Under the pieces are notes generated by a model. That model was not told the origin of the DNA. It ran no database searches and saw nothing but the letters and a program-made list of their open reading frames with translations. A stretch of 64,000 nt of DNA from Orbicella franksi (Eukaryota). Every line of letters begins with the position of its first letter. Position 1 is the first letter of the stretch. The stretch is from NCBI GenBank assembly GCA_964199315.1, contig OZ116700.1, positions 32,984,001 to 33,048,000 on the forward strand. Direction: 5' to 3'. Shown in pieces: positions 139 through 63,978 of this stretch. The position numbers and the translations under genes were made by a program.

Positions 139-342
139 CGCATTCTCCTTTCTTAACCACATTGAGTTCTCGTTTGATCTTGCATGCTTTGGCTCTCATA
201 TAACACTTGCTGGGGTAAGACCTTCCGTTATCAGCACACACACGCTCGTCCGGAGAAGCACATCTCGGGCACTGGCACTTGGCTTTGTTGTCAACAACAA
301 CACAATCCTGGTACGACTTGCAAACATGGAATGAGCATGGAT
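139..342 (-). CDS. Exon: FS/Kazal module 20
   Basis: 204 nt, phase 1-1; DPCSFHVC...CPRCASPDERVCADNGRSYPSKC...KGECG. Confidence 0.9.
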
Positions 343-9300: not shown

Positions 9301-12300
9301 GACACTCATCTTCTGTCCGGCACTTACACGTGACCGAGCCGTCAGCATTTCCAGTGCAGGCCGCGTTGTTTTTGCAGTCCTTAGCGAGGTCACATGGGCC
9401 TGAAAGGATCACCCATGCATACAATTTTAGAAATAGTGTAACGAAGCATGGCCAAGGGGTTAGGGCGTTGGTCTTGCAATTCAGAGGTCCCTGGTTCAAG
9501 GTCATAATCCAGGGCCTAGCTGGAATTTACTTCTTCTAGCAGTGGTGAATTGGTTAGTAGCCTAACTGTTCATTCAGGTAGAAATATTTGTTTCATGTAC
9601 AACCTCGCCCTTCCCAAGCAGCACACGTTAGCAAATACAAGCTATTATAAATCAAACAAAACACAATTACGTTTTATTTTATATTTTTTCTTGAAAAAAT
9701 AAAACAAAATACCCATTCATTGTTTGATGTCGACAAATTGTAATGTAGAGACTTTGCTTTTTGAAGATGACACTCGACAGTGGCTAAAATTGCCTATAAA
9801 CTTGTGGCCCACATAAATTATATTCACTCACCACAATAGCCATCTATCAAGACGTAAACTGACATTTCTTTCAGACAAGCCTTTGCTTTCATCACACACT
9901 CGTTGAGATATGTTTTGCCATCACTGCCGCATACAGTGTTAACAGTCATAGGGCAGTCCCTTTCATCCGGGCACTCGCACTGAACGTTCCCTTGAGAGTC
10001 CACCGTGCATTTCTTGGGTTCTTTACATTGCACACCAGCACAAGGCTCTGAAATAAAATTCACAACATAAAATGTCTGAATGGAGCACCCATGTTGGCAG
10101 GGCATTGATCACAACAAACGCAAAAGACAATTGCCAACATTTTTGAAGAGCAATATTAGGGAGCTTAAGCAAACCACGACGACGACGGCAACGAGAACGT
10201 CACCAAACAAAAAGTTTAATGAGCAAAACAACAGCTGTGCACGTGCGTGATAAATCTTTTTACATTTCTTTGCCGTCCTCTGCAAAACAACAACGTGAAA
10301 TGACCAAGTTTTGCGTAATCTGAAGAACGCGAACGACGACGGCTAATGTTTCGTATTTCCATTTTAGAAATGAACGCTGTCATTGCATATTTGTCTGAGC
10401 ACTTTCCGAGAGCCATTGGCGTGGTGAACAGATCTAGAAGTTGCGAATTTCGCCGGTAAAATATAAATTGATTTTTGACTAGGCGTTGTGCTCGGCGTCG
10501 CCGTCGTCGTTGCTTAAGCTCAAATACTTTTTTTGGTTCTTTAGGTGAGAAACACTTAAAACAACGAAAATATACTAACCACACTTTCCAGGTCTCTGTG
10601 CATCGACGGTTTCATTCATTAAGCAATTATCCACGTCCAGATAACACTGATTGATGTAAGTCTCGTTGTTCTGTCCACACACGGGAGCCGCAGTCTGGGG
10701 ACACTCCCTGACGTCCTTACATGAACACTGTGCATTTCCATCCTTCACTTCGCATCGTTCATGTTCCCTACATATAACACCAGCACAAAGACCTAGAAAG
10801 GAAAGTTGCCAAATGCTTTAATTAAAGGTTATCGTATACCTTTAGAGGTGTCTCGCGTCCAAGCGCTGTAGCGCGTCCGTTTAAACTGTAGATACCTGAC
10901 CCCCTATATCAAGTTAAAGCTTATAGAGCTGGCTATCAATCTATACGAAGAATTTTGAAATACAATGAGCTGTAGAATTTTTCACGACCTGTGAATGCGA
11001 GTATCCGAATCACCGTCAAAGGTGAACAACAAAATTCATCTCACTGATTGTCATAGGTTTCCTTCACAGTTCGTTTTGAGAATTTGGTGTTATATCAAAA
11101 CTATATCCACTCGTTGTATAACTATCTTTATTCTTATCACCCACCTACTTGATAACGTATTAATATACACCATCAAAACAAACCATTGTAAACTTAACAT
11201 TCGGTTTGCAGCTGTAAAAGTTTGGAATAATTTGGAGAAAATATGAAACACCTCCCCCTTTAAAGTTTCAAATACAAAGGTAAGTTTAGTATCTAACGCC
11301 TGGCCAAACGGAGTCGCAAGTGGACCCAAGCGTTCAATTCAGTGATTCAATGATATTGCCAACATTTATGAGTTTTCATCTGGCACTTACTAGTGACTTA
11401 TTTATTACCAATTTACTTTATTTCTAGGTATTTAGTGACTTATTGATTTATTCTGCTTACTTATTTGTTGTTGTTATGTTTTTTTCCTTTTATCCCCATA
11501 TTTTGTCTCCTTTCTTCTCCCCCCTTAAAAGCTTTACTGCCAACCAACTTCTTTATATACGTACTATTTAATTTCACCCAGCTCGAGTAGCTTTTAAGTT
11601 ATTCTGGGTGAATTTACCTAATTTTCTGTTACAATTATCTTTTTTTGTAACTAAGAGTTTTTTCTATTTTGGTAATAAAGTGTGTGTTGTCCTGTCTTGT
11701 TATATGTAAGGAGAAACTTGATTTCAGATCAAAGCTTACCACATGGCCCCAAGTTGTCAACAGTGATATCCTCTCCTTTTTTGCAAGCCTCAACTCGTAA
11801 TGCACAGTCATTATAATAGGTAACCTTATCACTGCCACACACTTGATCTCTAGTGGGTGGACAGTCACTCATCTTTGGACACACGCACTCCGTGGAGGTG
11901 AAATCAGTTGCTTTGCAGCGCGCATAGTGTTTACAAACCTTCTTCGCGCAAGGGTCTGTGAAATGAAACAAATATTGTCTTAGCCACGAGAGGAAGGCAA
12001 AAAAAGGCAGGGAGCGGAGGTCAAAAGCAACGAAGAAACAATGAAAGGCAGGAAAGAAGATAGACACAACGAAAGAACAAACATGTCTAGGCCTAAAAAT
12101 CTAATCGTACAAAGCCAGATGAGATTTTGACCACAAAAGACAAGCTCTACGACAAATTCTCCAGTCCTACGTTTTGCATATGGTGGTTTAAGTTTACCTT
12201 CACAAGTGTCTTTGGTCAGCCTTGCACTCAGATAACCAAGCTCATCCAGGCTGCTCACAGTGTGCATAAAATTGCTTCCACTGGCAAGACTGAGATGCCG

Positions 12301-50900: not shown

Positions 50901-53900
50901 GTGAACCTTCCGAATTCCTTGAGTTTTATTTTTCCTTGACAGTGTCCAAGCTGTTCAACAGTGTGTATTCTTACCATTGTTAGCCTTTTCCATCACTTCA
51001 GCGGCAATTTCCTTCGTACTTGCGGTGTCATTAGTCTCAATGACATTGTTAACGTTTAAGGTTGCCTCTGTCATTTCCTGCGGGTCAGCTTCTTTTCCAA
51101 ACGTGACCGCAATCACTCGGATCCCATCATGCTGCAGTGATCGAGCAACAACCGACACTGTAATTTCATCACTGTCTGACATCTTGTCCATGGCAACCAC
51201 TAGGATCCTTTTAGCATCTGGACGCTTTAACGCTGCCACTTGGAACAGCTCTCTAGCTTTTCGAAGCGCCCTGCCCAAATCTGCTCCCTCGTCATTCTTT
51301 GTAATACGCTGTAAGATCTGTCTTAATTCCTCAGGATCGCTCTCGTCTCCAAAATCAAGTTCTACATTTGGTTCTTTGCCAAATTTGATGACGCTATACC
51401 GAACAGTGGACGAGCCATAAGTGCCGAGGATCTCAGTTATAACAGATTTCATCTTCATGAAGTTATCGTCTGATTTTAAGGCTCTTGCACTGAGGGCAAA
51501 TGCAATATCTAGCATCTCCTCTTCGTCAGGCGTATCTAGAAATTAAAAAAAGACACTGCTAATGAGTCCAATGACGCAAAGAACACTAAAAGCTGCATTT
51601 CACTGACAAGCGAAAACTTGAACTCGTCGTCTCATTCTTTGCCTTAAACGATATCAGGGTGTGAACCATGAAATTAATATAATACCCGCCCATTTTAGAT
51701 TTAAATGTTTCAGCGTCACGCTGTTACCAAGGGATTCCTTGAAAACAGCACCTTGTTAGATCTTCACGTGAGGTTAATTCGCTCGCACAAAGTTCCGCAC
51801 TCAATGTGTTCAATTTTCGGCATTACCTAAAGTCTATACTATTTAAAGGATAAAATGTTGTGATCGTGTCCAAATACACCAATATTCCCGAACTTGCATT
51901 ATTGCTATTTTACGCTAAAGTATAATCCTTATAGCATTTTTAAGCCCAACCCAAAACTACCTTCAAGCACTTTAATCATAATTTTCTCCGCAGCTTTGTC
52001 AGGATTCTCATCTGTATCCATCTCAACCAAGTTATTTTTGTTCCGTGTGATTTCTTCAAGTTCCTCTTCACTCGCTTCTTCACCAAGCACCACAGGCACA
52101 ACTTTCACTCCAGCATTTTTCAGTTCTCTTGCCTTCTCCTTCGTCTTGTCACGATCACCTGACTGTTTCTGGTCCATGATGACAACTAACACCTTTTTCG
52201 CGTCCTGTCTGGCTGTATCCTCGAACATCTTCTTTGCTCTGTCAAGGGCTTTGTCCAGAGATGCACCAGAGATACGAGCGAGTCTGTCAACCCTATCCTT
52301 TAGGATCTCGATGGTGAAACGCTCACTCTCCGTAAACCGAACTCTCTCGGAGGGTTCATCGCCAAACAAAATGAAACTGTATCGAATGTCAGTCTTGCCA
52401 TAACGATCGATCACTGATTTGATGGTGTCCTTGATCGTTTGCAAGTTCTCTTCCGCATCTAAAGAACCGGTGCTTATTGCAAAGCCTAGGTCAAGCTTTG
52501 GAATCTCTGGTAGCTCTGTAAAAGAGAAAGATATTTTACGAATTAAGGGGATACTCAACACTGCTAAAAGAGAATAATAATTGTCATCGTCACTGTTGTC
52601 GTCATTGTCAGCATCATTCCCCAAGTCATCTTCGGGTTGTTTACATCAGTGACTCACCTTTTAGAGACTTATCAATTATTATTTCCGGCCATGTTTGAGG
52701 TTCAATAGGTTCACAAGTGGCAATGTACTCTTTGTTCGTAATTATGACCTCTATGTCATCAATATAAACTTCTGGACCAATCACTGCCGGTACAATTGTC
52801 ACATTCTTCTCAATTAACGATTCGGCAGCTTCCTTCAGGTCGTCGCGGGTATTGGCAGTCTTTTTGTCTACAAAAATGACAACAATTTTCCGGCTGCCTG
52901 GTCTGGGAGGAGCATTGTCAAACAGCTTCTCGGCTTCTTTCAAGGCTTTCACCACGTCTGGCTCGCCAGTAGGACGTCTGAGTTGTTGCACAGTGGCCCT
53001 CAGTGCTTCTTTGCCGCGGCCATCACTGAAGTCAACGACAACGGAATGCGTGTCACCAAATGTCATCAAAGCGTAGCGGAACTTGTCTGTTCCATAATGC
53101 TTGATTATGGCATCCACTGTGTCTATTATCTTGTCAAAGGTGTCCTCAGCATCAACAGCAGCCGCACTCAGAGCAAAGACGAAGTCGATGTCAGGGATAT
53201 CTCGAGTATCTGCAATACAATACACGAATATTATAAGAGCACCAGAGTCAGGCCTTGCAGAGACAACTATTGTAACACATTATGAACGACTGGAATACAT
53301 TCATTTGAACTATTCAGCACTAAACGTTACTTGGAGCGGTTTTCAATTGAGTGTCGTAAAACCAAAACCAAACCAATTACTTACCAATTAGACTACTCAG
53401 CCAATCTCAAACCATAGTACAACCAAAATTAAAACTTGAGTAATTGCCTGATAACTTTCGACACTCAATTGAAAACGCTCAAGTGCAACTTTCAATAACA
53501 TGTATTATCAGCCCAGTCGAGCTTTTGTTTAAAGATCGCCCTACAGGAATCCCGTTTGACTGTAATTTACTTGACAATATAAAATCAAACCCATGGAAAA
53601 AAAAGAAGTAATGTACTCCTTACCTTTGTCAATAGTTATAATAATCACCTCAGCCACGGAATCTGGATTGTCAGTGGTATTGGTAAGAACTGTAATTTCG
53701 GTTACAACATCTACTTCCGGTTTATCCACTTCATCACCAACACCAACAACAATCACTTTGACGCGATCAGCCTGTAATAACCTTGACGACGCCTTGACAT
53801 CATCTAGCTTGCTATCAGACTTGCCGTCAACCATTACCACAAGTATATTCTTAGCCGTTGGTCTCTGGGTGGAGGCCGCATTGAAGAGATCTCGCGCTTT

Positions 53901-56900
53901 TTCCAATGCTTTATCAAGCGATGCTATCCCAGTTGTCTTGGTGATGGAGTCAATGGTTCGTTTTTTATCCTCATCTGACAGCTGGTCGTCAAAATTAATA
54001 TGAACAATGGGAGGGTCTCCAAAAGATAGAACACTGTAGAAAATGTTGGATGTTGGGTAATTGTCTACAACGGACTTGATGATATCTTGCATTTGCCTGA
54101 AGGTTCTGTCCGAATCTAAGGAGGTGACACTTATCGCAAAGCCAAGGTTGATTTGAACCAGTCGTGAAGGATCTGTGAAATAAGAAACCCCAAAAAAATT
54201 AATTCTCTCTCCTGACATCACGTGAAAACGCGGTGGTCAGGACGTTAGATTCCGCATCGAGGGATACCAGTTCATGGTCATTGCTTTCTACTACTGGGAC
54301 AACGCGCTTAACTTTTACTATACGTCTCTCGACTCATATGCACAAGTCCGTACTAGCGAAGTGTTAGGGTTAACCGATGCAATGCAGAGGGATGGCCTAC
54401 AATGGCAATACATCTAGTCACTTCATGCGACAGAAACAGGGAGAGGTTCTGGAAGTTTGGGCCACATTGTCTTGAGCGCAGATTTTTCATAATTATACAT
54501 TTCATGTAAAGTAGCTTTGAGCTTTTGGTAGCAAATCATTCAAGACAATATACATAAAGTTGATAATTTTGATGAATTCAATCTTCGGCAAGGCAACATA
54601 CTAGGGCGATAACAGCTCACCACTCTGGTTTTTTATACAAATTGACAAACCTTCGATACATATTTGGCTTGCATGGTGCGTTTGTGTCCATCACAGATGG
54701 CAGAGCCTCCGGATAGATCACCATCCAGTGGACAGGTGTTACCGAAATAATTATCTTTTCCTTTCCGGGGGGGGGGGGAGGGCGGGGAAGGGGTAGACAG
54801 CGTAACGTTCTGGAGCTCATCATGATATATCATGCAATTTACCTTTGATAGCCTTTTTGATCTGCTCATCAACAGTATCCGTCACATCTTTGGGTTTATC
54901 AGTTGGTTTGACTGGAACAATGCGGTCTTCATCGTCTGTTACCGGTTCAACATGTTCCTTGTTGACTTCATCTCCGATGATGACAGGGATCACTGTTATT
55001 CCTTGATCCACCAGTTGCCGTGCTTTGGCCTTGAAAAAGATGGACACCATAGAGTATAATTACACCGCACATTGGAACAAAGAGAGAACAGTGGAATGGG
55101 AGCTTAAGGAGAAAAGATTAAAATCTTGGGCAGAGGCGGCATCAGCTGCAGGGGATAGGATAGCCTTGAAGCAGAGAGGCGACAGCCCAATTCTCTTCTA
55201 GCAGACCGGAACAATGATGTTGATGACATTATGACAAAACATTTGAGCTATGCTGTGTAGCAAATAATTGTATTCTGTCCAATATTTGTTCTGTTTGCGT
55301 TTCTTGGTATTGGTGTTGGCGCATGCCCATTCACCATTTATAAAAATGATTTGGGATTTTACATTCTGTACTCCCCCATGGTACTTTTACATCACCAAAT
55401 AAAACACGACATGGCCATTTCTGAGCCACCTTAAAGATCGCAATGCCTTCAACATCTCTAAACAACTGAAATTTTATTTACTGTCGAAACAACATTCTGA
55501 AAACTTGTATTGATTCTCTCCATTCTATTATACCAGGTACATGTCGCTTCTCTTAAGAGTTCCGTATTCTCCTAAATATCTTTAGAAACATTACAATAAC
55601 TGGAGACTGACTAGAAAATGTTCGGGTTACTTCAGTCTCCAGAGTCAAATATATCAAACACGAGAGACAGTGTTTAATAGAGACATCCCAACACCGAGAA
55701 GAGAGTTGAAAATACGACGCGCAGCGGAGTATTTTTGACGAAATTCGAGGTGTTTGAACAGCCGATGAAATACTGTCTTGAGTGTTTGATATATCCTCTT
55801 AATGAAAACAAAAACTAAGGAGTAAACGGAAAAGTAAAATCGTCAACTCTATGCTAATAGACCAATTTCGATATATTAAAATTCAGCCTAAAACAATAGA
55901 CCTTAGCACGAGGCTCTGGGGAATAACTACAGAGTTTGTGGGGTTTATTCCCCAGATCCTCGTGCTGAGCTCTGTTGTTTTAGGCTGAATTTTAATACAT
56001 CGAAATTGGTCTATTAAGACCGGGTATCCAAACCTCCTTCACGCTTGTGATTTTCTTCTTTTTAACTTGATTAATTATTAATGAGTTTGAGAACCCTACA
56101 TGTAAATACTGTAAATGTACGAGTGAATAAAGTTGTTGTTTTTGTAGATCGTCAACTATACATCAGCTCCGTCTTCCTCAGCATTGAAACCCCGCATTTC
56201 CCGCTCTGCAAAACTTGTGCCCGTTTCAAAAGGAAAACAATGAAATGTCGTTTACCTTTACAATCGTAGGCTCGCTTGGTGATAATTTATCCATGATTAC
56301 AACCAGTATCTTATTCGCCTGGCCCCGCGTTGAACCTCGGAACAGCGTCTTTGCTTCTTCTAGAGCCCTGTCCAGATTCGGGGAGCTGACGGTCGATAAC
56401 AATGCATCATCGACGGACTTCTTGAGCTTTGACTGCTTTGTGACCTGATCTGTAAATGGGATCTTTATCACTGCTGATGAGCCAAATACAATGAAGCCAT
56501 AATGAACACGGCCCACACCATAAAGATCGATCATTCCTTGAACCGTTTCTTTGACAAGTTTGAGGTTTTGTTGGGCGACGTCCACAGCAAATGCCAGGTC
56601 TACTTCCGGTCCCTTTGGCTCTGTAGGTAGACAATTCACAATAGCATGAATCACGTGGTGGTGCATCAGGTCTAAGTATTATAGCCTCAATGAATCATTG
56701 TCATCCAATGACAGAGGAATCCATGATCATTAAATTCTTTATATGATGATGATAAATCATACATAACATTGAACGGACCGGGAAGTGAATAATATGCGGT
56801 CTGTGTTGCACAAGACAACTGTTGATAATACTACAACGCATCGTCAAGTATCATATTTACCTCACAATTGATTAGTAATTCCTTTTATAGACTGAAAAGT

Positions 56901-59900
56901 CCACGTCAAAATAATTCTCACGTTTATTGTGTATTCGTTTCTTTTGCTTATTTTTCATGCAGCTTGGTTCTAACACAAAAAGCTACAAAACGTCTTCACT
57001 GAAATTATCAAGGCCATTGTAGACTATCGGCATCAAAGTATTCCTCTGCGCTTAGTGAGAACACTTTGCGACCCGTGGTCTAGGTTACCACTGTTAACGC
57101 TATATGCTTTCTGAGCAAAGTTTACCAGTTTACTCTTTGCCACTCTACACAATGCTACACTTCCCTTTCCCACGTAACATTTATTTACCTTTTAGAACTA
57201 GTATAATGATTTTCTTGCCAAGTTCCTTTGGATCCTCATCTGTAGTAGTTTCAGTCACTTCATGAGGAGTAAACTCTTCCAATTCTTTAGGGTCAGAGTC
57301 CTTCCCAATGACAACACTTATCAGCATAATATCATCTTCTGTAAGACGATCTGCTTCAGCCTTGACATCACCATAGCTGCTGTCAGAACCTCTGTCAGAT
57401 ATCACCACGACAACCTTCCTGGCATCGGGCCTTCCACTGGTCTTAAAGACTCTCCTTGCTTCATTGAGGGCGCTGTCTAAATCCGGGACTCCAAATTTAG
57501 GGAGGAGCCTTTTAACGTCAGTTTGAACATTGTTGTTTGTATTTTCTTGAATAGAAATCGCAGCTTCCGTGTCGCTTCCAAATACTACCACGCCCACTCG
57601 GATCACGTCCATGGAATACGTGTCCAGAATTGACGTGATGGTATCTTTCATCTGCTGAAAGTTGTCACGCCACTTCGCGGATGTAGCAGAGATTGCAAAA
57701 ACGATATCTGTTTCAGGTATACGTGGTTCTTCTAAAACTGTAAGGGGGGCAAAGGGTTACAACAAGTTCGTTCTTTGATCCACTGCAAGTTTATCTACAT
57801 GTAATTTACAAAACTATGTACTACGTAATGGAAGGACAGAATGGCTAAGGAAACTTTATTAACTATAAACAGTTACCTGCATTGCTGACTTGCACCAAAA
57901 TAACGTCAAAACAGAAACCTTTACAATTTTCTACCAATTTTCTGCTTTTGAATCGAATTGCTGTGAAGCTCACGGTTCATTAATGTTCAACGCTGCCAAA
58001 CCCCATACAGAATCACATTAGGGAGTTTAAGCAAATCACTACGACTGGTGCTACTGAGGCTGCCGTGACTGAAAAGGTCTGGGGAGAGTACGTCTCGGTG
58101 GTCTACCAAATTTTAAGTTTAGCGAGTAAAGCGAAATACAAAGATGAAAGAAACATCGGCTAAGGAGTTTAAAATCTCTTTCATTTAGCTTCTCACAGCC
58201 AAATGGCTTCGCTCAAAGGACGATGGCCGTTATTCGGAAGGACGAACATATTATTTCTGAGCGAAAGCGAATGCCATACATTTTGTACCATAACAATTTG
58301 ATGGATGAAATATATAATTTCAGAGACAAATATCTCAAAGAATATCGAGTGAAGAACACAAATATATCAACACTCAAAGAAGCAAAATAGCATCGTATAG
58401 TTATCCAGATATAAAACATCTCCATTAAACCCTCAAAGCAAACTTAACCGAAGAAAAACAACCTCGTGCTCAACAAGAATATTTCACTTGACTCACTTCG
58501 TCATTCCAACACCTTTGCCAAAACTTATCGTAAATTCAGGATACGGATTTACAAGCTTATGAGAGGCAACCTTGACACATTCTTTGACTTAAATTGACTT
58601 TAATGGATATAGTATCCAATGGAATTCTTAAGATGCCGAGATGTTCGTTGAAAAGGGCCAGAGAAGCGAAATAAACCCGACGTAGTAGCCACTACGGCAA
58701 AACATCCCGACTCACGTCGTCAGATTTCACGCTACGGCTGGATGCAACCGACGTACATGCGCACTGTCTCGTTTTGGGGGAAATTTACTTCCGGCAGCCG
58801 TATCAGTGCCAGCCGTAGCGATTTGCTTAAAGTCCCTATTCTTTAATGTAAGATATGATTAATGACCTACCACCGAAGGTCTTCTCCATAATCTGCTTGG
58901 CGAGTTCTTTTGGATCAACATCTTTGAACTCTTCAATAAGATTATCTTTACGCGTAGTTATTACTTCCAACTCATCAGGATCTGCTTCAACGCCAATCGC
59001 CACAGGAATAATAATCACATCGCCTCTATACAACTCCTTGGCAGCCTGGAGTTTTTTCATGTCGTCATCATCCCCAACGGACTCGTTATCAATCAACACC
59101 ACCAGGACTCTCTTTGCCCCAGGTCTCCTGGGAACCTCGTTGAACGCCTTCTTCGCTTCTTGCAAAGCCACATGGAGTCTAGGACTTCCAGGAGGCTGTC
59201 GTATGCGCTGAATGAAAGAAATAAGGGTTTCATCATTTAGATTTTGATTTCTGTAACTGATCTCGGTGTTGGCTTGGGTTCCAAACACGATGGCCAAGTA
59301 GTGCAGTTTGACGCTGCCGTACTTCCGAATGATTTCAGCTACGGTGTTTTTCATCAGCCTCGATGTGGTGCCACGATAGGTGCCTGTCGCACTGAATGCA
59401 AAGCAGAGCTCAATTTCTGGGGTTGGTTTGAGACCTGAAATGCAAAAATATGTACTTACAAAATAGCCATGATGGTTTTAATTTTGTGACGTGTTTCAGG
59501 GGTATAGCTATATGGCACCACTGTAACTCAAATCCATGGTTTATACTCTACATAACTGAACGAATTTATCTTCACGGTCAATTAAAAAGTACCCGTTTGG
59601 TTATAAAATAAAATTTGTTCGTCTTCTTGGTTGATTTTTCAACAAGTCGCAAAACACTAATCGTACTCAATTATTCTCACCCATGGACCAACACAATAAA
59701 TAAACACTCGGCCTGAAGTCCTAAACCGCAAATGTTTCTTTCGGTTCTAGATCTTGTGCTGTGTTTGATAGAATATTTACCAAAACATCAAGGCAGATCT
59801 ACAGTTATTACTAAGGCAGTGGCTCTCGCAGGATATCGCATGAATGGCCTGATACGCTTTGAGAGGACAATACAACAAACAACAGAAACAATGCTCCTAG

Positions 59901-62900
59901 CCCCAAAACAAAGCTTACGGAAGCTGTTACACCTCCGAACAGCTAACCTTCTTATCAACTCCCAACATACCTTTCTTCAACACCTCGTCAATCTTGCCCA
60001 CAGTCTTCTTAGGCTCTTCAGTTGTCGTTGGAATGCAACTCTCCTTATTTGGGGTGACCACTTCACAGATCGGAGGAACGTACCTCATTTTCAGAACCAC
60101 AAAGATAATCTGAATGCCCTCTGCTTCCATCGCCTTGGACGTTTTGCCTGCAGCAGCATTTCCAGTCTGGTCTTGGTCAGTGTAAATGATAACAACCTTT
60201 TTAGCGTGTGGTCGACTACCAGATCCATTTGCAAACAGCTTCTTAGCTTCGGCGAGCGCTAGGTCAAGTCTGGAAGTTCTACCAACTCGTGAAGGAAGTT
60301 TCTCGATAACGCTTTTGACCTGGCTGTCTGAAGAATATTTCTTCTGGAAAGTATTGACTGTTCTGACTCGAGAGTTGTAGGTGAGAAAGCTGTAGCCTGC
60401 TTCGCTAATTGGATGCTTGTCCAAAAGTTCCAGGCTCATTTTTCTGAAGTACGGCATGTTTTGTGCATTAAGAGACACTGCGATGACAAAGTCATGTTCA
60501 TCTTCATCCATTTCTGAAAATTATAACAAATAAGAAACATACTTTAGGCAAGAAAAACATTTTATGCATTCAATAATCCTCACTTGAACCAAATAATGTT
60601 TCTACATTAAAAATTTGCCAAATGCTTGAATTTTACAAACCTAAGTAGAGAGCTATAGACTCAAGGAAGCTATCATTTCTCAAAAACCTACCTTGAAATG
60701 ATCGGCTGGCAAAACTTGAGAGTATCACCTTAGCCTCAGACCCAACAATTTAACGGTATTCATTCATTTAATTGTAAAAACATTACCCTTACGTGATTTT
60801 GAAATAAGATTACAGTGTAACCGGGCCACTTAATAAACAAAAACCAAACTACTACAGAATGGAAACAACTAATCAATGACTTCTAACTTCAGTTGTCTTT
60901 CAGTGAAATATAAGGTTTCTTCTTGGAATGGACTTCAAAGCAAAACCCCTCGCAATTGTACTCTGCCAATAATGGAATTGTTTTTTTTGTTGTTGTTGTT
61001 GTTGTTTTTTTTTTTTGCCTAAGCGTCCCGCTTCGAGGGTCACCCATCCGTTTTATTTATTGTTAGTTCTCTGCATTTACCTTTGAAAACTTTGGACATA
61101 ATCTTCTCTTTCAAAACTATTACATAGACATCAGTCGTCACGTTGACAACGTTTGTTTTGTCGGAGGTAGTCTCTTCAAGTTCCACATGGTCAACCTCAT
61201 CTCCAATAGCTACCGGGATCACCTTAATTCCATCATCTTGCAACATCTTTGCAGTTGCCTTCACATCAACAAGCTTGCTAGTCGACTTCGCATCCGTGAT
61301 TAATACCAAAACTTTCCATGCATTTGGACGCTCTGGCGCGTCGTCAAACAATTCTTTTCCTTTCTTCAGGACTTCGTCTAGATCAGGACGTTCGTTTGAG
61401 CCAGACAGGATAGTGATCACGTTCTTGAGATTTTCGTCAGTAGGAAAATCGTCACCAAAGCTGACTTTAATCGAGGCTTTCGAGCCAAATACAATCACAC
61501 CATAACGAAGTTTATTCATGGCGTATGTGTCAATTATTGACTTTATCACTTCCTTTGCCTTCTCAAAGTTGTCATCCGCTTTCACTGATGCAGCACTGAT
61601 TGCAATTGCGAGATCTACTTCTGGGATTGGTAAAAGGTACAGATCTGTGAAAAAAAGGCGGCGAAGCATTGTTAAACAGCATAATTTGGCCACATATAGA
61701 AAAGCTTTTGACTAGGAAGAAAGCGTATCGTTCAATAATATTCATCCTCTAAGATTTAAAGAAGAATTATCTGTGATATATAAACACACTGAATCGCGCC
61801 CTGAATATTGATTCAATCGTCATCTTATGTAAGGTGTCGGTAAGCTACTTACACTTCGTCATGACAACAAGCCAGTGGATGCGACAACTTGTCCCTGGTA
61901 CCACGGAAAACTTAACGAACTGCCTAGCTTTGAAGAAAACTAGATAGTAGGGCTTCTACCTCTTGCGTTATTCGATTAGTTGGTAATAGAAAACACAAGA
62001 AACGTTAACTACATACAGAAAAAAGTGAACAATTTACTCACTTTCTCTAACTTTTTTCATAATTTTCTTGCCAAGTCTCTCTGGATTCTCTTGAGTTGGC
62101 ACTTCAATGATGTTTTTCTTTAGTGCAGTAGTCTTTTCTAGTTCCTCTCGATTCACTTTCCTTCCTATTCCAACCGGAATAACCTTAACCCAAAACTCTT
62201 CCAGTGCCATTGCAGATTTCAAGACGTCTTTCTCGGTGCTCCCTGACTTACTGTCCACCAAGAAAACAAGAACTTTCTTTGCATCTGGCCGAGCTCCGGG
62301 TGCTTCAAACACCTTCTTCGCATCTGCCAATGCAAGATCTAAATCAGGCGTACCGCTCACAGTAGACAGGCTCTCAAGCTTCTTCAACAAGGCTTGTTCA
62401 TCTGGGAATGTATCTTGGAAGTCCACAACTGTTCTTGTTATCGAGCCGTATGTCATGACGGTGTAATGGATGTTCTTCATGCCATGTGCTGCCACAATGG
62501 AGAGTAAAGTTTCTTTCATTAAACCAAACGTTTCCTTTGCTTCCGTTGAGGAAGCACTGACTGCAAACACCAGGTCAATTTTCTCTTGGCCAAGTGGGTC
62601 TGGAACTAAGTATGAAAAATATTTCATTACTTTAGAATATTCAAAGGGCAAAAACCTAAGAATTCAACAAAAGCACACTAACAAGCAAAGTAGCTAGTTC
62701 GTGTCACGAAGCGCACATGTTAAGTAATAATAAAGGCAGGAACTGATAAAAGTTATTTATAACAGAATACTGATTCCCCATTACTTCGACATAACTTCGC
62801 GTAACTGTTACAAAGCCAAAAACGCAATATCTTGTTCTTCTGAGGAATTGTTACTCCTTTTGGAAGCTTCGTTTTTAACTTTACGAAATCTTGATAACGC

Positions 62901-63978
62901 GTCACTTTTACACAGTTTGGAAATACGAAAGAGGGTCTGCTATTGTTGGAAAAAGCAAGCTTGTAGTTTAAAGCAACCAGGTCTTTGAGACAGGTAGTAC
63001 TTGATACAAATAGAACTAGCAACTAAGCGAGTAACGTAAACATCGTGATTCTGATAATGAGTACTTCCGACCTCAAAACAGTGGCACCAAGACCCCCTCG
63101 TTCCCTCCCCGTCCTCCCCCCCCCCCCCCCCCATATAACTACGCTGTATACATGGTTACCACAGACATCAGTTTTCAAAATCTCCTGACTTGTCCCTGAT
63201 AAGGAAACACATCATTGAGATCACAGTGACTCCAAATGTTTCTTCCAGCCGTCAATGGTATTAAATCTGCCCTGTAAAATAATTTCAACTTTCTCTGACT
63301 TTTCTTCAAAAAGTCAATTTCCCTTGGCTCAAAATAAAATTCCCTGACTTTTCCCTGACCTCGAATTTTTTCGCTGACCATTCCTGACCTGTGGCAACCC
63401 TTTGTATAAAAACGTACCTTGTGCTATTAGTCGTATAATTTCTTCACTAGTCTTTTCCGGATCTTCGTCTGAGGTGGTGTTCATCGAATCACCATCAGTT
63501 GGCGTGAGAGTTCCCAATTCATTGGAGTCAACCTCACTTCCAACCGCAACAGTTATGATTGTCACGTGATTGTCGATCAAGTCCTGAGCAACTCCCTTAG
63601 CAACTTCCTTATCTCCAGATGATTCATCATCCGTCATGACAACCAGTATTTGTCTTGCATCTGGTCTCACAGCGTCATCGTCGGTGAAAAGTTGTTTTGC
63701 TTTCTGCAATGCTTTGTCTAATGCTGATCCTCCTGGAATGTTTGATGCTGAGCTCACCAACTCCACAAGCTGATCTGGGTCTGTGATGCCATCAGAGAAC
63801 TTCAGGACGACAGAAGGTTCATTTCCGTACAGGACAACAGCATAGTGAATCTGATTCATGCTATAGTTCTGCATGATATTCGTTACAACGTCTTTCATGT
63901 ATGGAAATGTTTTGAAGGATTTTGAAGATTGCGAACTTAGAAGAAACATCAAGTCGATCTTGGGAAGCATTGTCCTCT
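139..63978 (-). CDS. Giant multi-exon gene, partial (runs off both window ends): predicted extracellular protein with 38 VWA, 20 follistatin/Kazal and 1 GON domain
   Basis: 70 exons with canonical AG/GT borders and compatible phases joining into one open frame of about 8,676 aa; no start, signal peptide or stop seen; VWA and FS exons interleave at 12-23 kb, supporting one gene. Confidence 0.85.
712..918 (-). CDS. Exon: FS/Kazal module 19
   Basis: 207 nt, phase 1-1; EPCRFVVC...ECPDTEEPVCGSDGITYDNEC (absent from ORF track, read by hand). Confidence 0.9.
1422..1640 (-). CDS. Exon: FS/Kazal module 18
   Basis: DCVPVVKPVCGTDGKTYINEC; tandem CAGCAG acceptor (1640 or 1637). Confidence 0.9.
1732..1966 (-). 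mobile_element. About 230-bp TTAA-flanked MITE (Kolobok-like), copy 1
   Basis: TTAA then AGGAG...GTCACG / CGTGACTGAGC termini; reverse-orientation homolog of 12534-12757. Confidence 0.65.
2325..2546 (-). CDS. Exon: FS/Kazal module 17
   Basis: 222 nt; DCSYSPAPVCGSDGNAYPNEC. Confidence 0.9.
3105..3323 (-). CDS. Exon: FS/Kazal module 16
   Basis: 219 nt; ECPLSGEKVCGSDGKTYDNEC. Confidence 0.9.
3466..3826. repeat. Compound tetranucleotide microsatellite (GTCG/GTCA then GACA/CAGT)
   Basis: Visible degenerate 4-mer repeats; source of spurious ORFs 3388-3910. Confidence 0.9.
3848..4060 (-). CDS. Exon: FS/Kazal module 15
   Basis: 213 nt; DCPWKVDLICGSDGQSYLNEC (absent from ORF track). Confidence 0.9.
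4576..4809 (-). CDS. Exon: FS/Kazal module 14
   Basis: DCSAVKVLVCGSDGTTHKVYNNMC; alternative in-frame acceptor at 4803. Confidence 0.85.
5270..5476 (-). CDS. Exon: FS/Kazal module 13
   Basis: 207 nt; FCPSLGEPVCGSDGKTYENRC (absent from ORF track). Confidence 0.9.
6095..6381. repeat. Interspersed repeat with subterminal hairpin
   Basis: TTTCTATGCGCGATAGTTGA...TCAACTATCACGCGATAGAAA inverted pair near 6306-6363. Confidence 0.5.
6431..6655 (-). CDS. Exon: FS/Kazal module 12
   Basis: 225 nt; QCSNATRAVCGDNAKTYRDKC. Confidence 0.9.
6729..6944 (-). CDS. Exon: FS/Kazal module 11
   Basis: 216 nt; ECPDINDPVCGTNGKTYESEC; 73-bp intron to next exon. Confidence 0.9.
7492..7707 (-). CDS. Exon: FS/Kazal module 10
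   Basis: 216 nt; DCPRDYDPVCGSDGRNYITSC. Confidence 0.9.
7904..8176 (+). mobile_element. MITE with TAGAGCGGTTTTC terminal inverted repeats
   Basis: TAGAGCGGTTTTCAGTTGAGTGTCG...CGACACTCAAGAGAAAACCGCTCTA; relatives at 25024 and 53332. Confidence 0.8.
8331..8546 (-). CDS. Exon: FS/Kazal module 9
   Basis: 216 nt; DCAKEKDRVCGTDGNTYLNEC. Confidence 0.9.
8612..8760. repeat. Interspersed repeat with central hairpin
   Basis: TTTGTCAAAATTCTAATAAT-9 nt-ATTATTAGAATTTTGACAAA. Confidence 0.5.
9181..9399 (-). CDS. Exon: FS/Kazal module 8
   Basis: 219 nt; ECPEDGDGVCGSDGQTYINKC. Confidence 0.9.
9445..9600 (+). mobile_element. Degenerate tRNA-derived SINE
   Basis: A-box-like TGGCCAAGGGG and B-box-like GGTTCAAGG; no complete cloverleaf. 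Confidence 0.55.
9832..10047 (-). CDS. Exon: FS/Kazal module 7
   Basis: 216 nt; DCPMTVNTVCGSDGKTYLNEC. Confidence 0.9.
10161..10521 (+). mobile_element. MITE with GAGCTTAAGCAA...CGACGACGGC TIRs
   Basis: Left GAGCTTAAGCAAACCACGACGACGACGGC, right GCCGTCGTCGTTGCTTAAGCTC; relative at 20440. Confidence 0.75.
10580..10792 (-). CDS. Exon: FS/Kazal module 6
   Basis: 213 nt; ECPQTAAPVCGQNNETYINQC (absent from ORF track). Confidence 0.9.
11080..11290 (+). mobile_element. Decayed 3' end of CR1/L2-group LINE ORF2
   Basis: IKTNHCKLNIRFAAVKVWNNL resembles the RTNYGKF-IRF-G-K-WN C-terminal motif. Confidence 0.55.
11740..11955 (-). CDS. Exon: FS/Kazal module 5
   Basis: 216 nt; DCPPTRDQVCGSDKVTYYNDC. Confidence 0.9.
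12198..12429 (-). CDS. Exon: VWA38 C-terminal half
   Basis: 232 nt, phase 0-1; VPKSLIAIVVG...GVQIFVVAV...DTCEG. Confidence 0.85.
12534..12757 (+). mobile_element. TTAA-flanked MITE (Kolobok-like), copy 2
   Basis: TTAA-AGGAGCTCAGTCGCG...CGTGATAGAGCTCCC-TTAA. Confidence 0.75.
12806..13131 (-). CDS. Exon: VWA38 N-terminal half
   Basis: 326 nt, phase 1-0; ACPFPMDVVFALDSSAE...THVGVITVG. Confidence 0.85.
13210..13596. mobile_element. Possible piggyBac-like MITE remnant
   Basis: Right end GGCACTCAAGGGG-TTAA; internal hairpin CTCAGTACGTCA...TGACGTACTGAG; left end degenerate. Confidence 0.35.
13737..14351 (-). CDS. Exon: GON domain (ADAMTS9/20/GON-1 type)
   Basis: 615 nt, phase 1-1; SCVEVK...DGHY...IYCHMM...TNFTKVRLD...AGDCYS...CRKGGFKVDLSGT...CGGWCGRCKP matches GON motifs. 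Confidence 0.9.
14796..15353 (-). CDS. Exon: VWA37
   Basis: 558 nt, phase 1-1; IDLAFVIGTSG...EDILVVMTEG. Confidence 0.85.
15794..16006 (-). CDS. Exon: FS/Kazal module 4
   Basis: 213 nt; DCSTEPVKAVCGSDMVTYPNEC. Confidence 0.9.
16553..16768 (-). CDS. Exon: FS/Kazal module 3
   Basis: 216 nt; SCPENYRPVCGSDVKSYLNEC. Confidence 0.9.
17433..17642 (-). CDS. Exon: FS/Kazal module 2
   Basis: 210 nt; LCSSFFRPVCGSNSRTYWNAC. Confidence 0.9.
18067..18211 (-). CDS. Exon: VWA36 C-terminal part
   Basis: 145 nt, phase 0-1; VIPVAIGQQVG...VMKAVLK (absent from ORF track). Confidence 0.8.
18545..18773 (+). repeat. Interspersed repeat family R, copy 1 (carries the empty site GCTAATTAAGACC)
   Basis: GAAGAGAGTTGAAAATACG...GCGGAGTATTTTTGACGAA core shared with 43545 and 55648. 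Confidence 0.8.
18861..19279 (-). CDS. Exon: VWA36 N-terminal part
   Basis: 419 nt, phase 1-0; IDIAFAISATS...RKFVVVIVD...GIK. Confidence 0.88.
19854..20088 (-). CDS. Exon: VWA35 C-terminal half
   Basis: 235 nt, phase 0-1; AVVVIMD...LFVVGVG...QICPLK. Confidence 0.85.
20440..20705 (+). mobile_element. MITE related to 10161-10521
   Basis: AGGGAGCTTAAGTAAAC...TGTTTAAGGTCCCT termini and shared internal sequence. Confidence 0.7.
20718..20858. mobile_element. Degenerate short MITE (GGATAACGCTATCCAC family)
   Basis: CAGTTGTCC...TTGAACAATT ends; related to 22593-22727. Confidence 0.5.
20927..21365 (-). mobile_element. 5'-truncated RTE-clade non-LTR retrotransposon, apparently recent insertion
   Basis: Open 140-aa RTE C-terminus (YGCEAW...RRRWNWIGH...GKRRPGRPKTTWRR), (GATAG)n tail, 12-bp TSD CCTACAACAGTT at 20915-20926 and 21366-21377. 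Confidence 0.92.
21415..21713 (-). CDS. Exon: VWA35 N-terminal half
   Basis: 299 nt, phase 1-0; ACNNSVDLLFIMDG...TRVGLL...RPDVKQ. Confidence 0.85.
21772..21968 (-). mobile_element. Degenerate SINE body
   Basis: CCGTAGCAT...CTACTCCCC...CTAGTCCATTGCAG...GAGAAGCCGTGAG; related to 30435 and 54222. Confidence 0.5.
22171..22392 (-). CDS. Exon: FS/Kazal module 1
   Basis: 222 nt; YCPQSYNPVCASDKQTYPNNC. Confidence 0.9.
22593..22727. mobile_element. Short MITE (GGATAACGCTATCCAC family)
   Basis: TIRs GACCCGAGTTGTTGGAAAG / CCTTCGAACAACTGCGGTC; internal inverted GATAACGCTATCCA / TGGATAGCGTTAT. Confidence 0.7.
22775..23338 (-). CDS. Exon: VWA34
   Basis: 564 nt, phase 1-1; LDISFVVSTTA...RKIIVVMIDKKS. 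Confidence 0.9.
23822..24047 (-). CDS. Exon: VWA33 C-terminal half
   Basis: 226 nt, phase 0-1; VLVIITDAS...DKLLS. Confidence 0.85.
24453..24772 (-). CDS. Exon: VWA33 N-terminal half
   Basis: 320 nt, phase 1-0; LDLAFAISALP...ARKDAQK. Confidence 0.88.
25024..25295 (-). mobile_element. MITE, inverted copy of the 7904-8176 family
   Basis: TAGGGTGGTTTTCACTTGAGTGTCG...CGACACTCAATGGAAATCTGCCCTA. Confidence 0.75.
25335..25889 (-). CDS. Exon: VWA32 (super-repeat type B)
   Basis: 555 nt; IDLGFAISAAA...KKVLVVIADKS. Confidence 0.9.
26178..26714 (-). CDS. Exon: VWA31 (type A2)
   Basis: 537 nt; MDLAFVISTTA...MKVLVVITDKRS. Confidence 0.9.
26835..27025. repeat. (GACA)n-type compound microsatellite
   Basis: Visible GACA/TACA/GACC repeats. 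Confidence 0.9.
27149..27697 (-). CDS. Exon: VWA30 (type A1)
   Basis: 549 nt; VDLAFAISANA...RKVLVVITDTKS. Confidence 0.9.
27768..27898 (-). mobile_element. SINE fragment with a V-domain-like core
   Basis: GGAAAACCGGAGAACCCGGAGAAAAACCC, reverse complement of a GGGTTTTCTCCGGG.TCTCCGGTTT V-SINE-type motif as I recall it. Confidence 0.45.
27900..28200 (-). mobile_element. 3' end of CR1/L2-group LINE ORF2
   Basis: HGYHERKAHSFRLPLCRTNVRQFSAFYRGPKYFNSLPLEI...KKLK, typical ORF2 C-terminus. Confidence 0.75.
28264..28827 (-). CDS. Exon: VWA29 (type B)
   Basis: 564 nt; MDICVAFGTSD...KKFLVIFVGSKS. Confidence 0.9.
29271..29519 (-). CDS. Exon: VWA28 C-terminal half
   Basis: 249 nt, phase 1-1; LRPDAKKVLVIIIDNKS. 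Confidence 0.85.
30085..30390 (-). CDS. Exon: VWA28 N-terminal half (type A2)
   Basis: 306 nt, phase 1-1; MDLLLAISTTA. Confidence 0.88.
30435..30680 (-). mobile_element. Degenerate SINE body
   Basis: CCGGTTTCCGTTTCATGGAGCGATTAGGAGTATTGCTACT...GAGAAAGGCACTGTG. Confidence 0.5.
30739..31027 (-). CDS. Exon: VWA27 C-terminal half
   Basis: 289 nt, phase 0-1; GRPNAKKVLVVISDKRS. Confidence 0.85.
31215..31514. repeat. 125-bp tandem repeat, about 2.4 units
   Basis: GTCGATTTTCGCTTC recurs at 31220, 31345 and 31470. Confidence 0.9.
31621..31886 (-). CDS. Exon: VWA27 N-terminal half (type A1)
   Basis: 266 nt, phase 1-0; VDMILAVSSTA...DLAK. Confidence 0.88.
31920..32298. mobile_element. PIF/Harbinger-type MITE
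   Basis: 25-bp TIR GG(T/C)CCAGTTCAGACGTCGTGCTTCT with 1 mismatch; TTA on both flanks. Confidence 0.85.
32847..32988 (-). CDS. Exon: VWA26 C-terminal part
   Basis: 142 nt, phase 0-1; VIPVAIGSDA...LGRKIMSVVIK. Confidence 0.85.
33309..33712 (-). CDS. Exon: VWA26 N-terminal part (type B)
   Basis: 404 nt, phase 1-0; ADLAFAISSNA...GIK. Confidence 0.88.
33799..34031 (+). mobile_element. Kolobok-like MITE, copy 3 (degenerate ends)
   Basis: CAGTCACGTTATTTTGAGTTATTTTGG...GTGCAAACCATGA homologous to 12534-12757. Confidence 0.7.
34300..34854 (-). CDS. Exon: VWA25 (type A1)
   Basis: 555 nt; VNLIFAISALS...KRVLVVIADKKS. Confidence 0.9.
35144..35215 (-). pseudogene. tRNA-like sequence (tRNA pseudogene or SINE head)
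   Basis: GCCTCGGTAGCTCAGTGGTTAGAGC...GGTTCGAATCC; A/B boxes and D-stem intact, anticodon stem unpaired. Confidence 0.65.
35365..35922 (-). CDS. Exon: VWA24 (type B)
   Basis: 558 nt; LDLGFVISASA...KKVLVVIMDKKS. Confidence 0.9.
36257..36814 (-). CDS. Exon: VWA23 (type A2)
   Basis: 558 nt; LDLAFVISSTA...KKILVVIIDNK. Confidence 0.9.
37102..37235. repeat. Hairpin formed by two head-to-head repeat fragments
   Basis: ATGAAGACATCAATGATCATCGCAATTATACACACAA / TTGTGTATATAACTGCGATGATCAATCACGTCTTCAT. Confidence 0.7.
37407..37674 (-). CDS. Exon: VWA22 C-terminal half
   Basis: 268 nt, phase 0-1; EFSSGGRQNARKILVVITDKRS. Confidence 0.85.
38030..38316 (-). CDS. Exon: VWA22 N-terminal half (type A1)
   Basis: 287 nt, phase 1-0; VDMIFAISANA...LAKE. 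Confidence 0.88.
38759..39107 (-). CDS. Exon: VWA21 C-terminal part
   Basis: 349 nt, phase 0-1; IRTYL...GGPDLQKAL...KKVLVVIMDKKS. Confidence 0.88.
39699..39907 (-). CDS. Exon: VWA21 N-terminal part (type B)
   Basis: 209 nt, phase 1-0; IDLAFAISSAA...DDDM. Confidence 0.88.
40085..40378. repeat. Interspersed repeat with subterminal GC hairpin
   Basis: TTGAAAATGCTGCCC...GGGCAGCATTTTCAA. Confidence 0.55.
40600..40791 (-). mobile_element. One-ended MITE fragment (Harbinger-like terminus)
   Basis: Ends TAGTGTGGACGGGGCC-TTA; partner end not found. Confidence 0.45.
40906..41463 (-). CDS. Exon: VWA20 (type A2)
   Basis: 558 nt; VDMGFAISATA...MKVLVVITDKKS. Confidence 0.9.
41910..42461 (-). CDS. Exon: VWA19 (type A1)
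   Basis: 552 nt; MDLVFAISTIS...KKVLVVILDRKS. Confidence 0.9.
42964..43518. mobile_element. 555-bp foldback element with about 245-bp arms, TTAA-like flanks (Kolobok-like)
   Basis: AGTGCCACTATGAT...ATCATAGTGGCACT; arms align over their length around a spacer of about 60 bp. Confidence 0.88.
43545..43738 (-). repeat. Repeat family R, copy 2 (inverted)
   Basis: TTCGTCAAAAATACTCCGCT...TATTTTCAACTCTCTTC is the reverse complement of the core at 18545. Confidence 0.8.
43764..44321 (-). CDS. Exon: VWA18 (type B)
   Basis: 558 nt; IDLGFAISATA...KKVLVVITDKKS. Confidence 0.9.
44474..45034 (-). CDS. Exon: VWA17 (type A2)
   Basis: 561 nt; MDVAFAISATA...KKILVIMTDRES. Confidence 0.9.
45458..46012 (-). 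CDS. Exon: VWA16 (type A1)
   Basis: 555 nt; LDLAFAISANA...KRVLVLVTDKRS. Confidence 0.9.
46395..46952 (-). CDS. Exon: VWA15 (type B)
   Basis: 558 nt; IDITFAINTAA...NKVLVVVTDAKS. Confidence 0.9.
47559..47894 (-). CDS. Exon: VWA14 C-terminal part
   Basis: 336 nt, phase 1-1; SISKNRRGAAL...KNVLVVITDKKS. Confidence 0.88.
48293..48517 (-). CDS. Exon: VWA14 N-terminal part (type A2)
   Basis: 225 nt, phase 1-1; MNLAFAISARA...RFI. Confidence 0.88.
48996..49547 (-). CDS. Exon: VWA13 (type A1)
   Basis: 552 nt; LDLLFALSANA...KKVLVIITDKKS. Confidence 0.9.
49730..49815. repeat. (GAA/CAA)n low-complexity tract
   Basis: Visible trinucleotide repeats next to the VWA12 donor. Confidence 0.8.
49824..50381 (-). 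CDS. Exon: VWA12 (type B)
   Basis: 558 nt; VDLGFAISVTD...KKVLAVILDNKS. Confidence 0.9.
50975..51535 (-). CDS. Exon: VWA11 (type A2)
   Basis: 561 nt; LDIAFALSARA...KRILVVAMDKMS. Confidence 0.9.
51961..52515 (-). CDS. Exon: VWA10 (type A1)
   Basis: 555 nt; LDLGFAISTGS...KKVLVVIMDQK. Confidence 0.9.
52658..53209 (-). CDS. Exon: VWA9 (type B)
   Basis: 552 nt; IDFVFALSAAA...RKIVVIFVDKK. Confidence 0.9.
53332..53482. mobile_element. Short MITE related to the 7904 family
   Basis: TGGAGCGGTTTTCAATTGAGTGTCG...CGACACTCAATTGAAAACGCTCAA. Confidence 0.75.
53624..54172 (-). CDS. Exon: VWA8
   Basis: 549 nt; INLGFAISVTS...KNILVVMVDGKS. Confidence 0.9.
54222..54480 (+). mobile_element. Degenerate tRNA-derived SINE
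   Basis: GCGGTGGTCAGGACGTTAGATTCC head; CTAGTCACTTCATGCGACAGAAACAGGGA tail. Confidence 0.45.
54843..55029 (-). CDS. Exon: VWA7 C-terminal part
   Basis: 187 nt, phase 0-1; AKARQLVDQGITVIPVIIG. Confidence 0.85.
55648..56085 (+). repeat. Repeat family R, copy 3, interrupted by a hairpin MITE
   Basis: Same core as 18545; homology resumes (TTAAGACC...ATCCAAAC) after 56013. Confidence 0.8.
55859..56012. mobile_element. 154-bp hairpin MITE nested in repeat R
   Basis: About 68-bp arms AGACCAATTTCGAT(A/G)TATTAAAATTCAGCCTAAAACAA...CACGAGG with few mismatches. Confidence 0.9.
56256..56620 (-). CDS. Exon: VWA7 N-terminal part
   Basis: 365 nt, phase 1-0; VDLAFAVDVA...NKILVVIMDKLS...IVK. Confidence 0.88.
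57189..57737 (-). CDS. Exon: VWA6
   Basis: TDIVFAISATS...RKVVVVISDRGS; alternative in-frame acceptor at 57731. Confidence 0.88.
58020..58837. mobile_element. 818-bp non-autonomous TIR DNA transposon
   Basis: About 46-bp TIRs AGGGAGTTTAAGCAAATCACTACGACTGG / CCAGCCGTAGCGATTTGCTTAAAGTCCCT; ATT on both flanks. Confidence 0.8.
58871..59434 (-). CDS. Exon: VWA5
   Basis: 564 nt; IELCFAFSATG...KRVLVVLIDNES. Confidence 0.9.
59971..60513 (-). CDS. Exon: VWA4 (divergent)
   Basis: 543 nt; HDFVIAVSLNA...KKVVIIYTDQD. Confidence 0.88.
61081..61644 (-). CDS. Exon: VWA3
   Basis: 564 nt; VDLAIAISAAS...WKVLVLITDAKS. Confidence 0.9.
62042..62599 (-). CDS. Exon: VWA2
   Basis: IDLVFAVSASS...KKVLVFLVDSKS; alternative in-frame acceptor at 62605. 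Confidence 0.88.
63151..63404. mobile_element. MITE with CA(G/T)GGTT(G/A)CCACAG TIRs
   Basis: Left CATGGTTACCACAG, right CTGTGGCAACCCT; TGTATA/TA flanks; TCCCTGAC subrepeats. Confidence 0.6.
63418..63978 (-). CDS. Exon: VWA1 (first in window; gene continues upstream)
   Basis: 561 nt, phase 1-1; IDLMFLLSSQS...RQILVVMTDDES; acceptor AG at 63979-63980. Confidence 0.9.

Follow-up and report, generated by a model that had tools for sequence, protein, structure and literature searches.

The 64,000-nt stretch of the coral Orbicella franksi genome analyzed here (contig OZ116700.1, positions 32,984,001 to 33,048,000; hereafter the window) contains long open stretches, nearly all of them on the minus strand. 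An earlier note, made from the letters alone, had read these as one giant modular protein secreted from the cell. The locus therefore raises the questions of whether a single gene spans the window, how this gene begins and ends, and what its product might do.

Exon Structure of the Window

The gene is encoded on the minus strand, with the N-terminus of its product at the high coordinates of the window. Exons were assembled with a splice-graph dynamic program using splice-site matrices trained on the clearest exons, and two boundaries were corrected manually: the VWA36 donor was placed at AAG/GTTAGT at 18860, and the donor of the second VWA38 exon at GAAG/GTAAAC, in phase 1. A first dynamic-programming model was dropped because it over-rewarded coding length and returned 71 over-extended exons with odd phases, and three mini-exons proposed by the algorithm (36-41 nt) were left out of the model as doubtful. 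The final model comprises 70 exons, every one with an AG acceptor and a GT donor, and 26,004 nt of coding sequence (8,667 codons, 0 stops), close to the 70 exons and about 8,676 stop-free codons first reported for this stretch. Introns range from 73 to 1326 nt (median 515). Phase 1-1 exons make up 52 of the 70, and all inter-domain boundaries are in phase 1; 11 VWA domains are each encoded on two exons, nine with phases 1-0/0-1 and two with phases 1-1/1-1. Outward of the first acceptor (63978) and the last donor (139), both at the coordinates given in the earlier note, the sequence is intron up to the window ends, which confirms the claim that the window begins and ends inside the gene, and the orthologous locus described below continues in both directions. 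The portion of the protein encoded in the window amounts to about 950 kDa. An open frame of 26 kb, together with domain E-values as low as 1e-75, excludes chance, and the exon model supports a giant modular secreted protein in one frame.

Pfam searches on ten of the open stretches returned VWA, GON and Kazal_1/Kazal_2 domains, and HMMs built from the window's own exons were then used to place all units. By these two means 38 VWA domains, one GON domain and 20 follistatin/Kazal (FS) units were identified, and VWA, FS or GON explain all 70 exons. Their counts and their order from N to C (VWA x34, FS, VWA x2, FS x3, VWA, GON, VWA, FS x16) reproduce exactly those of the earlier note.

All features lie on the minus strand. 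The 34 tandem domains VWA1-VWA34 (22775..63978) occupy 42 exons, eight of the domains being split over two, with E-values to 1e-75 against our own HMM and a Pfam VWA match of 2e-18 on one unit. FS1 (22171..22392) is a single phase 1-1 exon encoding 10 cysteines (Pfam Kazal_1 3e-9; own HMM 1.5e-20). It is followed by VWA35 (19908..21713), whose two exons (21415-21713 and 19908-20088, phases 1-0/0-1) each encode a half with a Pfam VWA match, and by VWA36 (18067..19279; exons 18861-19279 and 18067-18211; HMM 4.5e-56). FS2-FS4 (15794..17642) are encoded by three exons (HMM 1e-23 to 1e-27) and have one-to-one orthologs at 59-64% identity. VWA37 (14796..15353; Pfam VWA 1e-18) and the GON domain (13737..14351) are on a single exon each; the GON exon, 615 nt in length and encoding 10 cysteines, matches Pfam GON at 3e-56 over profile positions 2-193 of 199. 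VWA38 (12198..13131) is encoded by exons 12806-13131 and 12198-12429 and has a Pfam VWA match (1e-11) in its first half. Finally, FS5-FS20 (139..11955) are 16 units of one phase 1-1 exon each (HMM 1e-17 to 1e-28; Pfam Kazal), an array that runs past the window. Gly-X-Y runs (at least five triplets, in any coding frame), TSP1 motifs and transmembrane-like stretches were absent from the window, as were reprolysin, disintegrin and TSP1 modules in searches with Pfam, our own HMMs and a motif scan, in agreement with the earlier statement that Gly-X-Y, TSP1 and protease domains are lacking here.

The introns contain further elements. The longest in the model (1,326 nt, within VWA35) contains a 148-aa open stretch (20946-21389, minus strand) without a Pfam match; this is probably a fragment of a transposon, given its resemblance to the conserved C-terminal tail of non-LTR retrotransposons. 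A tRNA-like element in the VWA24-VWA25 intron (35141-35216, minus strand; Rfam tRNA 38.6 bits), for which ARAGORN reports an abnormal four-base anticodon, is probably a tRNA-derived repeat or pseudogene. Intronic tandem repeats were located at 31220-31514 (125-bp unit x2.4), 26831-27020 ((ACAG)n x47), 15505-15601 (42-bp unit x2.3) and 3461-3539 (32-bp unit x2.4).

Evidence for One Transcription Unit Across the Window

The introns at the junctions between blocks of different domains (VWA34-FS1, FS1-VWA35, VWA36-FS2, FS4-VWA37, VWA37-GON, GON-VWA38 and VWA38-FS5) are 242-605 nt long and in phase 1. The largest gap between coding exons, 1,326 nt, leaves no room for a 3' end, a promoter and a signal-peptide exon, and a crude window scan for an internal start codon with a signal-like hydrophobic stretch returned only intronic pyrimidine-tract artefacts. 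These features of the sequence argue strongly for one transcription unit across the window.

Sequence Divergence and Conserved Residues of the Units

The 34 array VWA domains have a mean pairwise identity of 33% (range 17-50%), neighbors being no closer to each other than distant units, and FS5-FS20 have a mean pairwise identity of 37%. Units this divergent point neither to a recent tandem expansion nor to an assembly artefact. The highly repetitive architecture and the lack of a full-length model in any database searched might suggest an array of decayed pseudogenes or the expansion of a few units during assembly, yet such an origin is extremely improbable: no stop interrupts the 8,667 codons, all 140 splice sites are intact, units at 17-50% identity to each other cannot be collapsed or expanded copies, and the FS units each have their own ortholog in another species and are under purifying selection, as detailed below.

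Most of the array VWA units contain no cysteine. In the MIDAS motif (DxSxS...T...D), Ser takes the place of the first Asp in 32 of the 38 VWA domains and the beta4 Asp is present in 35, while DxSxS occurs in none of the 38. When a profile of 26 single-exon VWA domains was compared with solved structures, the best match was collagen VI alpha3 (5e-68, over four stretches), followed by PTMP1 (2.8e-38, two VWA) and then by integrin I domains. Judged by these residues and matches, the VWA units look like metal-ion-independent protein-binding beads. The FS units are uniform in their cysteines, with 10 in all 20 units of the window.

The GON domain of the window is 73-74% identical to its ortholog, with a dN/dS of 0.20. 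Among 1.84 billion representative proteins, invertebrate GON domains are found together with EGF, C-type lectin, kringle, WSC, LCCL, trypsin, link and VWA domains, and GON-GON and GON-VWA arrangements occur in amphioxus. The domain is thus widely shuffled in invertebrates, and its presence outside ADAMTS proteins is unremarkable by itself.

An Orthologous Coral Locus and the C-Terminal Part

The best matches of the GON exon among the 1.84 billion representative proteins were short coral ORF fragments at 69-74% identity. A 656-kb contig of a coral assembly (ENA ERZ25067889) contains one of these fragments and was read in 10-kb steps. On one strand this contig carries FS x3, VWA, GON, a split VWA and then FS units, in the same order as the window. 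Each of FS2-FS20 has its best match at the corresponding contig position, at 55-78% identity, with the second-best unit reaching at most 48%. For FS2-FS20, VWA37, GON and VWA38 pooled, dN is 0.23, dS is about 1.8 (saturated) and dN/dS is about 0.13, and the units are under purifying selection across a deep coral split. A search with VWA34 returned orthologous single-exon ORFs only, at 60-93% identity, from many other coral assemblies. Given this unit-by-unit conservation across deeply diverged stony corals, the protein is likely a major component of the coral matrix.

The FS array of the orthologous contig is 12 units longer than the part seen in the window, with 28 FS units after the last array VWA and 31 in the C-terminal part. 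After the last FS unit, exons for LamG-EGF-LamG-EGF-VWA follow on the same strand (Pfam Laminin_G 1.7e-11 and 4e-8). The acceptor of the first LamG exon is in phase 1 and compatible with the phase-1 donor of the last FS unit. Among solved structures, the first LamG is best matched by human agrin (9e-27), then by neurexin, pikachurin and perlecan; for the second, neurexin is closest and agrin next. The terminal VWA is split; its final exon, read through a weak donor, can end at a stop two codons further on. Neither laminin-EGF nor SEA exons were found in the 2.7 kb that separate the first LamG exon from the FS array, or anywhere else in the 80-kb C-terminal stretch of the ortholog, and no Gly-X-Y triple helix was seen in the orthologous stretches read. 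The protein had initially been set apart from agrin as having no LamG, which is correct inside the window; for the whole gene it does not hold, since the ortholog continues with the 12 additional FS units and LamG-EGF-LamG-EGF-VWA and begins with a head of signal peptide, possibly NtA-like domain, FS and GON.

Two minor observations concern this assembly. In the intron after the unit equivalent to FS13, the orthologous contig has a single-exon 303-aa gene of the CECR6/TMEM121 family on the same strand (L005, 12979-13890); the matching intron of the window is about 460 nt long and without such a gene. Two contigs of ENA ERZ25067889, ctg50146 and ctg49546, are 98.3% identical over 11.8 kb of the 3' end of the gene and are probably two haplotypes.

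The N-Terminal Head in Related Corals

Another group of GON fragments, at 51% identity to the window GON, includes a 1,113-aa protein of Acropora muricata that NCBI calls 'agrin-like' (XP_067051278). It starts with a signal peptide, after which come a domain of about 125 residues and then FS, GON, FS, VWA, FS x2, VWA and FS. This protein is collinear with the 656-kb contig, on the same strand and 144 kb upstream of the second GON. The orthologous locus extends over about 216 kb, counted from its first exon to its last VWA exon, and its introns are roughly 1.6-fold longer than those of O. franksi. The same FS-GON-FS order is found in a scyphozoan: a 403-aa sequence from Sanderia malayensis (P0009) aligns over 374 residues with this part of the Acropora head (41% identity), which makes the head of the gene older than the split between anthozoans and jellyfish.

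The N-terminal domain of the head had no Pfam NtA match at E-values up to 10 and no PDB sequence match. Aligned with three NtA domains by hhalign, it gave a probability of 29% and an E-value of 6e-4, with GDT(R/K) and (L/M)P(V/I)T motifs in common. An AlphaFold model built from three sequences was mostly helical and unreliable (pLDDT 68). In a language-model search of the ESM Atlas an NtA cluster ranked top (0.90), with NTR/TIMP clusters next. On this evidence we consider it fairly probable that the domain is of the NtA/NTR type.

Combining the window with its orthologs, we think it likely that the window covers the middle part, with 26 kb of coding sequence, of a single very large coral gene whose product is a secreted matrix protein. 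The N-terminal part of this protein would consist of a signal peptide, a small domain that is possibly NtA/NTR, FS, GON and FS units. Its core would be an array of about 60 collagen-VI-like VWA domains that lack MIDAS and are interspersed with a few FS units, followed by VWA-GON-VWA; about 28 FS units and then LamG-EGF-LamG-EGF-VWA would make up its C-terminal part. The whole protein would have about 15,000 residues, with about 60 VWA, more than 35 FS, two GON, two LamG and two EGF domains; at this predicted length, the term 'titin-scale' used for it earlier is an overstatement. For O. franksi we infer a single full-length transcript and the gene ends in the genome, the ends being seen in a related coral.

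Transcript-Like Contigs and Database Fragments

Two public contigs from related corals resemble partial transcripts of the gene. On a contig of 2,086 nt, P0175 (569 aa) has four head exons joined, at positions where the genomic introns are 0.5-3.7 kb long. P0201 (451 aa, on a contig of 2,340 nt) joins VWA37 to GON without a gap at the predicted junction, where a Pocillopora-like genomic scaffold has a 310-nt intron; its cluster contains ten near-identical copies. From these contigs, which cover parts of a transcript only, it follows that related corals express parts of the gene and splice them as predicted.

No full-length model was found in the databases: the GON search of 1.84 billion representatives gave fragments and unrelated GON proteins, and length-limited homology searches for a long cnidarian model reached bilaterian agrins through FS and ADAMTS9 through GON, besides one transcript-like hit. 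As had been anticipated, annotation pipelines split and mislabel the gene, with Pocillopora fragments named 'ADAMTS9-like' (XP_027046299, 219 aa) or 'VWFA' (a chimera of 544-552 aa) and Acropora fragments named 'agrin-like'.

Three Pocillopora models (RMX44090, CAH3042684 and XP_027046300) begin with a signal peptide and PAN, followed by a short COLFI-like exon and then by VWA37-GON. The COLFI-like exon, of about 50 residues, is also present in P0201, joined to VWA37. The pocilloporid signal-peptide/PAN and COLFI-like exons might stem from a promoter inside the gene, be specific to this lineage or belong to a chimeric gene model. If there were several transcription units or alternative promoters, shorter products would be expected, e.g., an 'agrin-like' head with the VWA array and a separate VWA37-GON-FS-LamG product. 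We regard such a division as quite unlikely, even though the signal peptide and PAN are convincing and are spliced through the COLFI-like exon to VWA37 in two independent Pocillopora annotations, the transcript-like P0201 carries the COLFI-like exon attached to VWA37, and all database models of the gene are short. A repeat gene of 100-200 kb is expected to yield short models from gene predictors or from prokaryote-style ORF calling. Moreover, the FS4-VWA37 intron is just 440 nt in the window, a search of the window and of 80 kb of the orthologous contig gave no trace of the Pocillopora signal-peptide, PAN or COLFI-like exons, and the boundaries between blocks are all in phase 1 with introns of 242-605 nt.

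Comparison With Agrin, Collagen VI and Other Matrix Proteins

In domain content the protein looks agrin-like at both ends, with a collagen-VI-like core. Like the coral gene product, agrin is secreted and has a tandem array of 10-cysteine follistatin/Kazal units, and the orthologous locus adds a C-terminal LamG-EGF-LamG-EGF to this likeness. However, agrin has nine FS units, two laminin-EGF domains, a SEA domain and three LamG domains and lacks VWA and GON, whereas the coral gene has about 60 VWA, two GON, more than 35 FS and only two LamG seen, with no LE or SEA found in the parts scanned. What distinguishes agrin from its relatives perlecan and pikachurin is the presence of NtA, SEA and tandem follistatin domains in addition to the C-terminal LamG domains of the family, and proteins that have the mobile Kazal and LamG domains in common need not be orthologs (PMC3927612). 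In a 2011 analysis against the Nematostella proteome, human agrin grouped with neurexins (PMC3927612), and the text of a Nematostella matrisome paper makes no mention of agrin or of a protein of this kind (PMC12549020). The coral gene may share only mobile domains with agrin, in the sense of an 'epaktolog' (PMC3927612), and not be its ortholog.

The core resembles collagen VI alpha3 (and alpha5/alpha6) in its tandem VWA beads, mostly of one exon each. Collagen VI alpha3 has about 12 VWA domains and a Gly-X-Y triple helix, compared with 38 VWA, no Gly-X-Y and no DxSxS in the coral window. Mussel PTMP1, the second-best solved match of the coral VWA profile, is a collagen-binding matrix protein of tandem VWA domains; it comes from mollusc byssus and has two VWA domains only. 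A full-length GON domain is found in ADAMTS9, ADAMTS20 and C. elegans GON-1 as in the coral window. In the coral gene, unlike in these proteins, GON is internal and flanked by VWA, a second GON lies near the N-terminus, and protease, disintegrin and TSP1 domains are absent from the window.

Giant secreted matrix proteins are known from C. elegans (DIG-1, about 13,100 aa) and Drosophila (Dumpy, about 23,000 aa), so that the size class is not unprecedented. Both are enormous modular chains that tie cells to matrix; their domains are different and no homology is implied. The octocoral 'agrin-like' proteins (Corallium rubrum agrin-1 and agrin-2, and Kazal+WAP proteins of Tubipora and Sinularia) are likewise large secreted FOLN/Kazal arrays of cnidarians, and they too have been hard to assemble, with fragments mapped to loci of 34-45 kb (PMC7853314, PMC7533068). 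They combine Kazal with thyroglobulin-1, WAP and other domains, and no VWA array, GON or LamG has been reported for them, in contrast to the coral gene.

A protein combining VWA, GON, FS and LamG was not found described in literature searches covering VWA+GON+Kazal, cnidarian agrin, coral 'agrin-like' proteins and Nematostella NtA. As a tentative and rather doubtful extension, corals, and cnidarians back to the jellyfish split, might make as their version of agrin a single protein of about 15,000 residues, having an NtA-type laminin anchor, a receptor-binding LamG tail, about 60 VWA, two GON and more than 35 FS. If so, it would be one of the largest known matrix proteins and a missing link, in which agrin-type and collagen-VI-type modules were once together in one molecule of the basement membrane or mesoglea.

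Possible Roles

The protein would likely act as a long flexible chain of beads that cross-links the matrix. Its head and LamG tail would anchor the chain to partners in the basement membrane or on the cell surface, by analogy with agrin, and the VWA beads could offer many protein-binding sites for collagens or for self-association, by analogy with collagen VI and PTMP1. The FS units may bind ligands of the TGF-beta family or proteases.

Alternatively, the main role could be non-structural, with the FS units forming a polyvalent trap in the matrix that would inhibit proteases through its many Kazal units and/or serve as a sink for TGF-beta/BMP ligands, and the VWA array serving only as its tether. 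At least 30 FS units follow the array in the ortholog, all 20 units of the window keep their 10 cysteines, and the residues at the putative P1 position differ widely between units, much as they do in multi-headed Kazal inhibitors: over the 20 FS units they read Q S E T P Q M E K R D N S A W L Y P D S, with K, R, L, M, Y, W, A and others represented. P1 is nevertheless identical in only six of the 19 orthologous FS pairs, in which whole units are about 66% identical. This variability fits fast-evolving inhibitor loops in an arms race or, equally, the absence of an inhibitory role or constraint. The 'agrin-like' proteins with Kazal repeats from octocoral sclerite and axis matrix have been discussed as protease inhibitors (PMC7853314, PMC7533068); these have thyroglobulin-1 and WAP domains, however, and are without VWA, GON and LamG. 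Binding of agrin itself to BMP2, BMP4 and TGF-beta1 is a result cited in PMC3927612. With about three quarters of the window codons in VWA domains, which points to a scaffold, we consider a mainly trapping function unlikely. The scaffold and trap roles do not exclude each other.

If made as one chain, the protein would rank in size with the largest extracellular proteins of animals, and current gene catalogues do not show the gene. In proteomics of coral skeleton, mesoglea and mucus, its peptides would be mis-assigned to 'ADAMTS9-like', 'agrin-like' and 'collagen VI-like' fragments, and its signal would be split in single-cell and expression atlases. Surveys of the evolution of the basement-membrane toolkit may record cnidarian agrin-type proteins wrongly, as either absent or present. 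In addition, the gene offers a natural system for asking what about 60 VWA domains without MIDAS and arrays of at least 35 follistatin units bind. Since nearly every domain is encoded by a phase 1-1 exon, exon skipping could yield in-frame isoforms of varied length.
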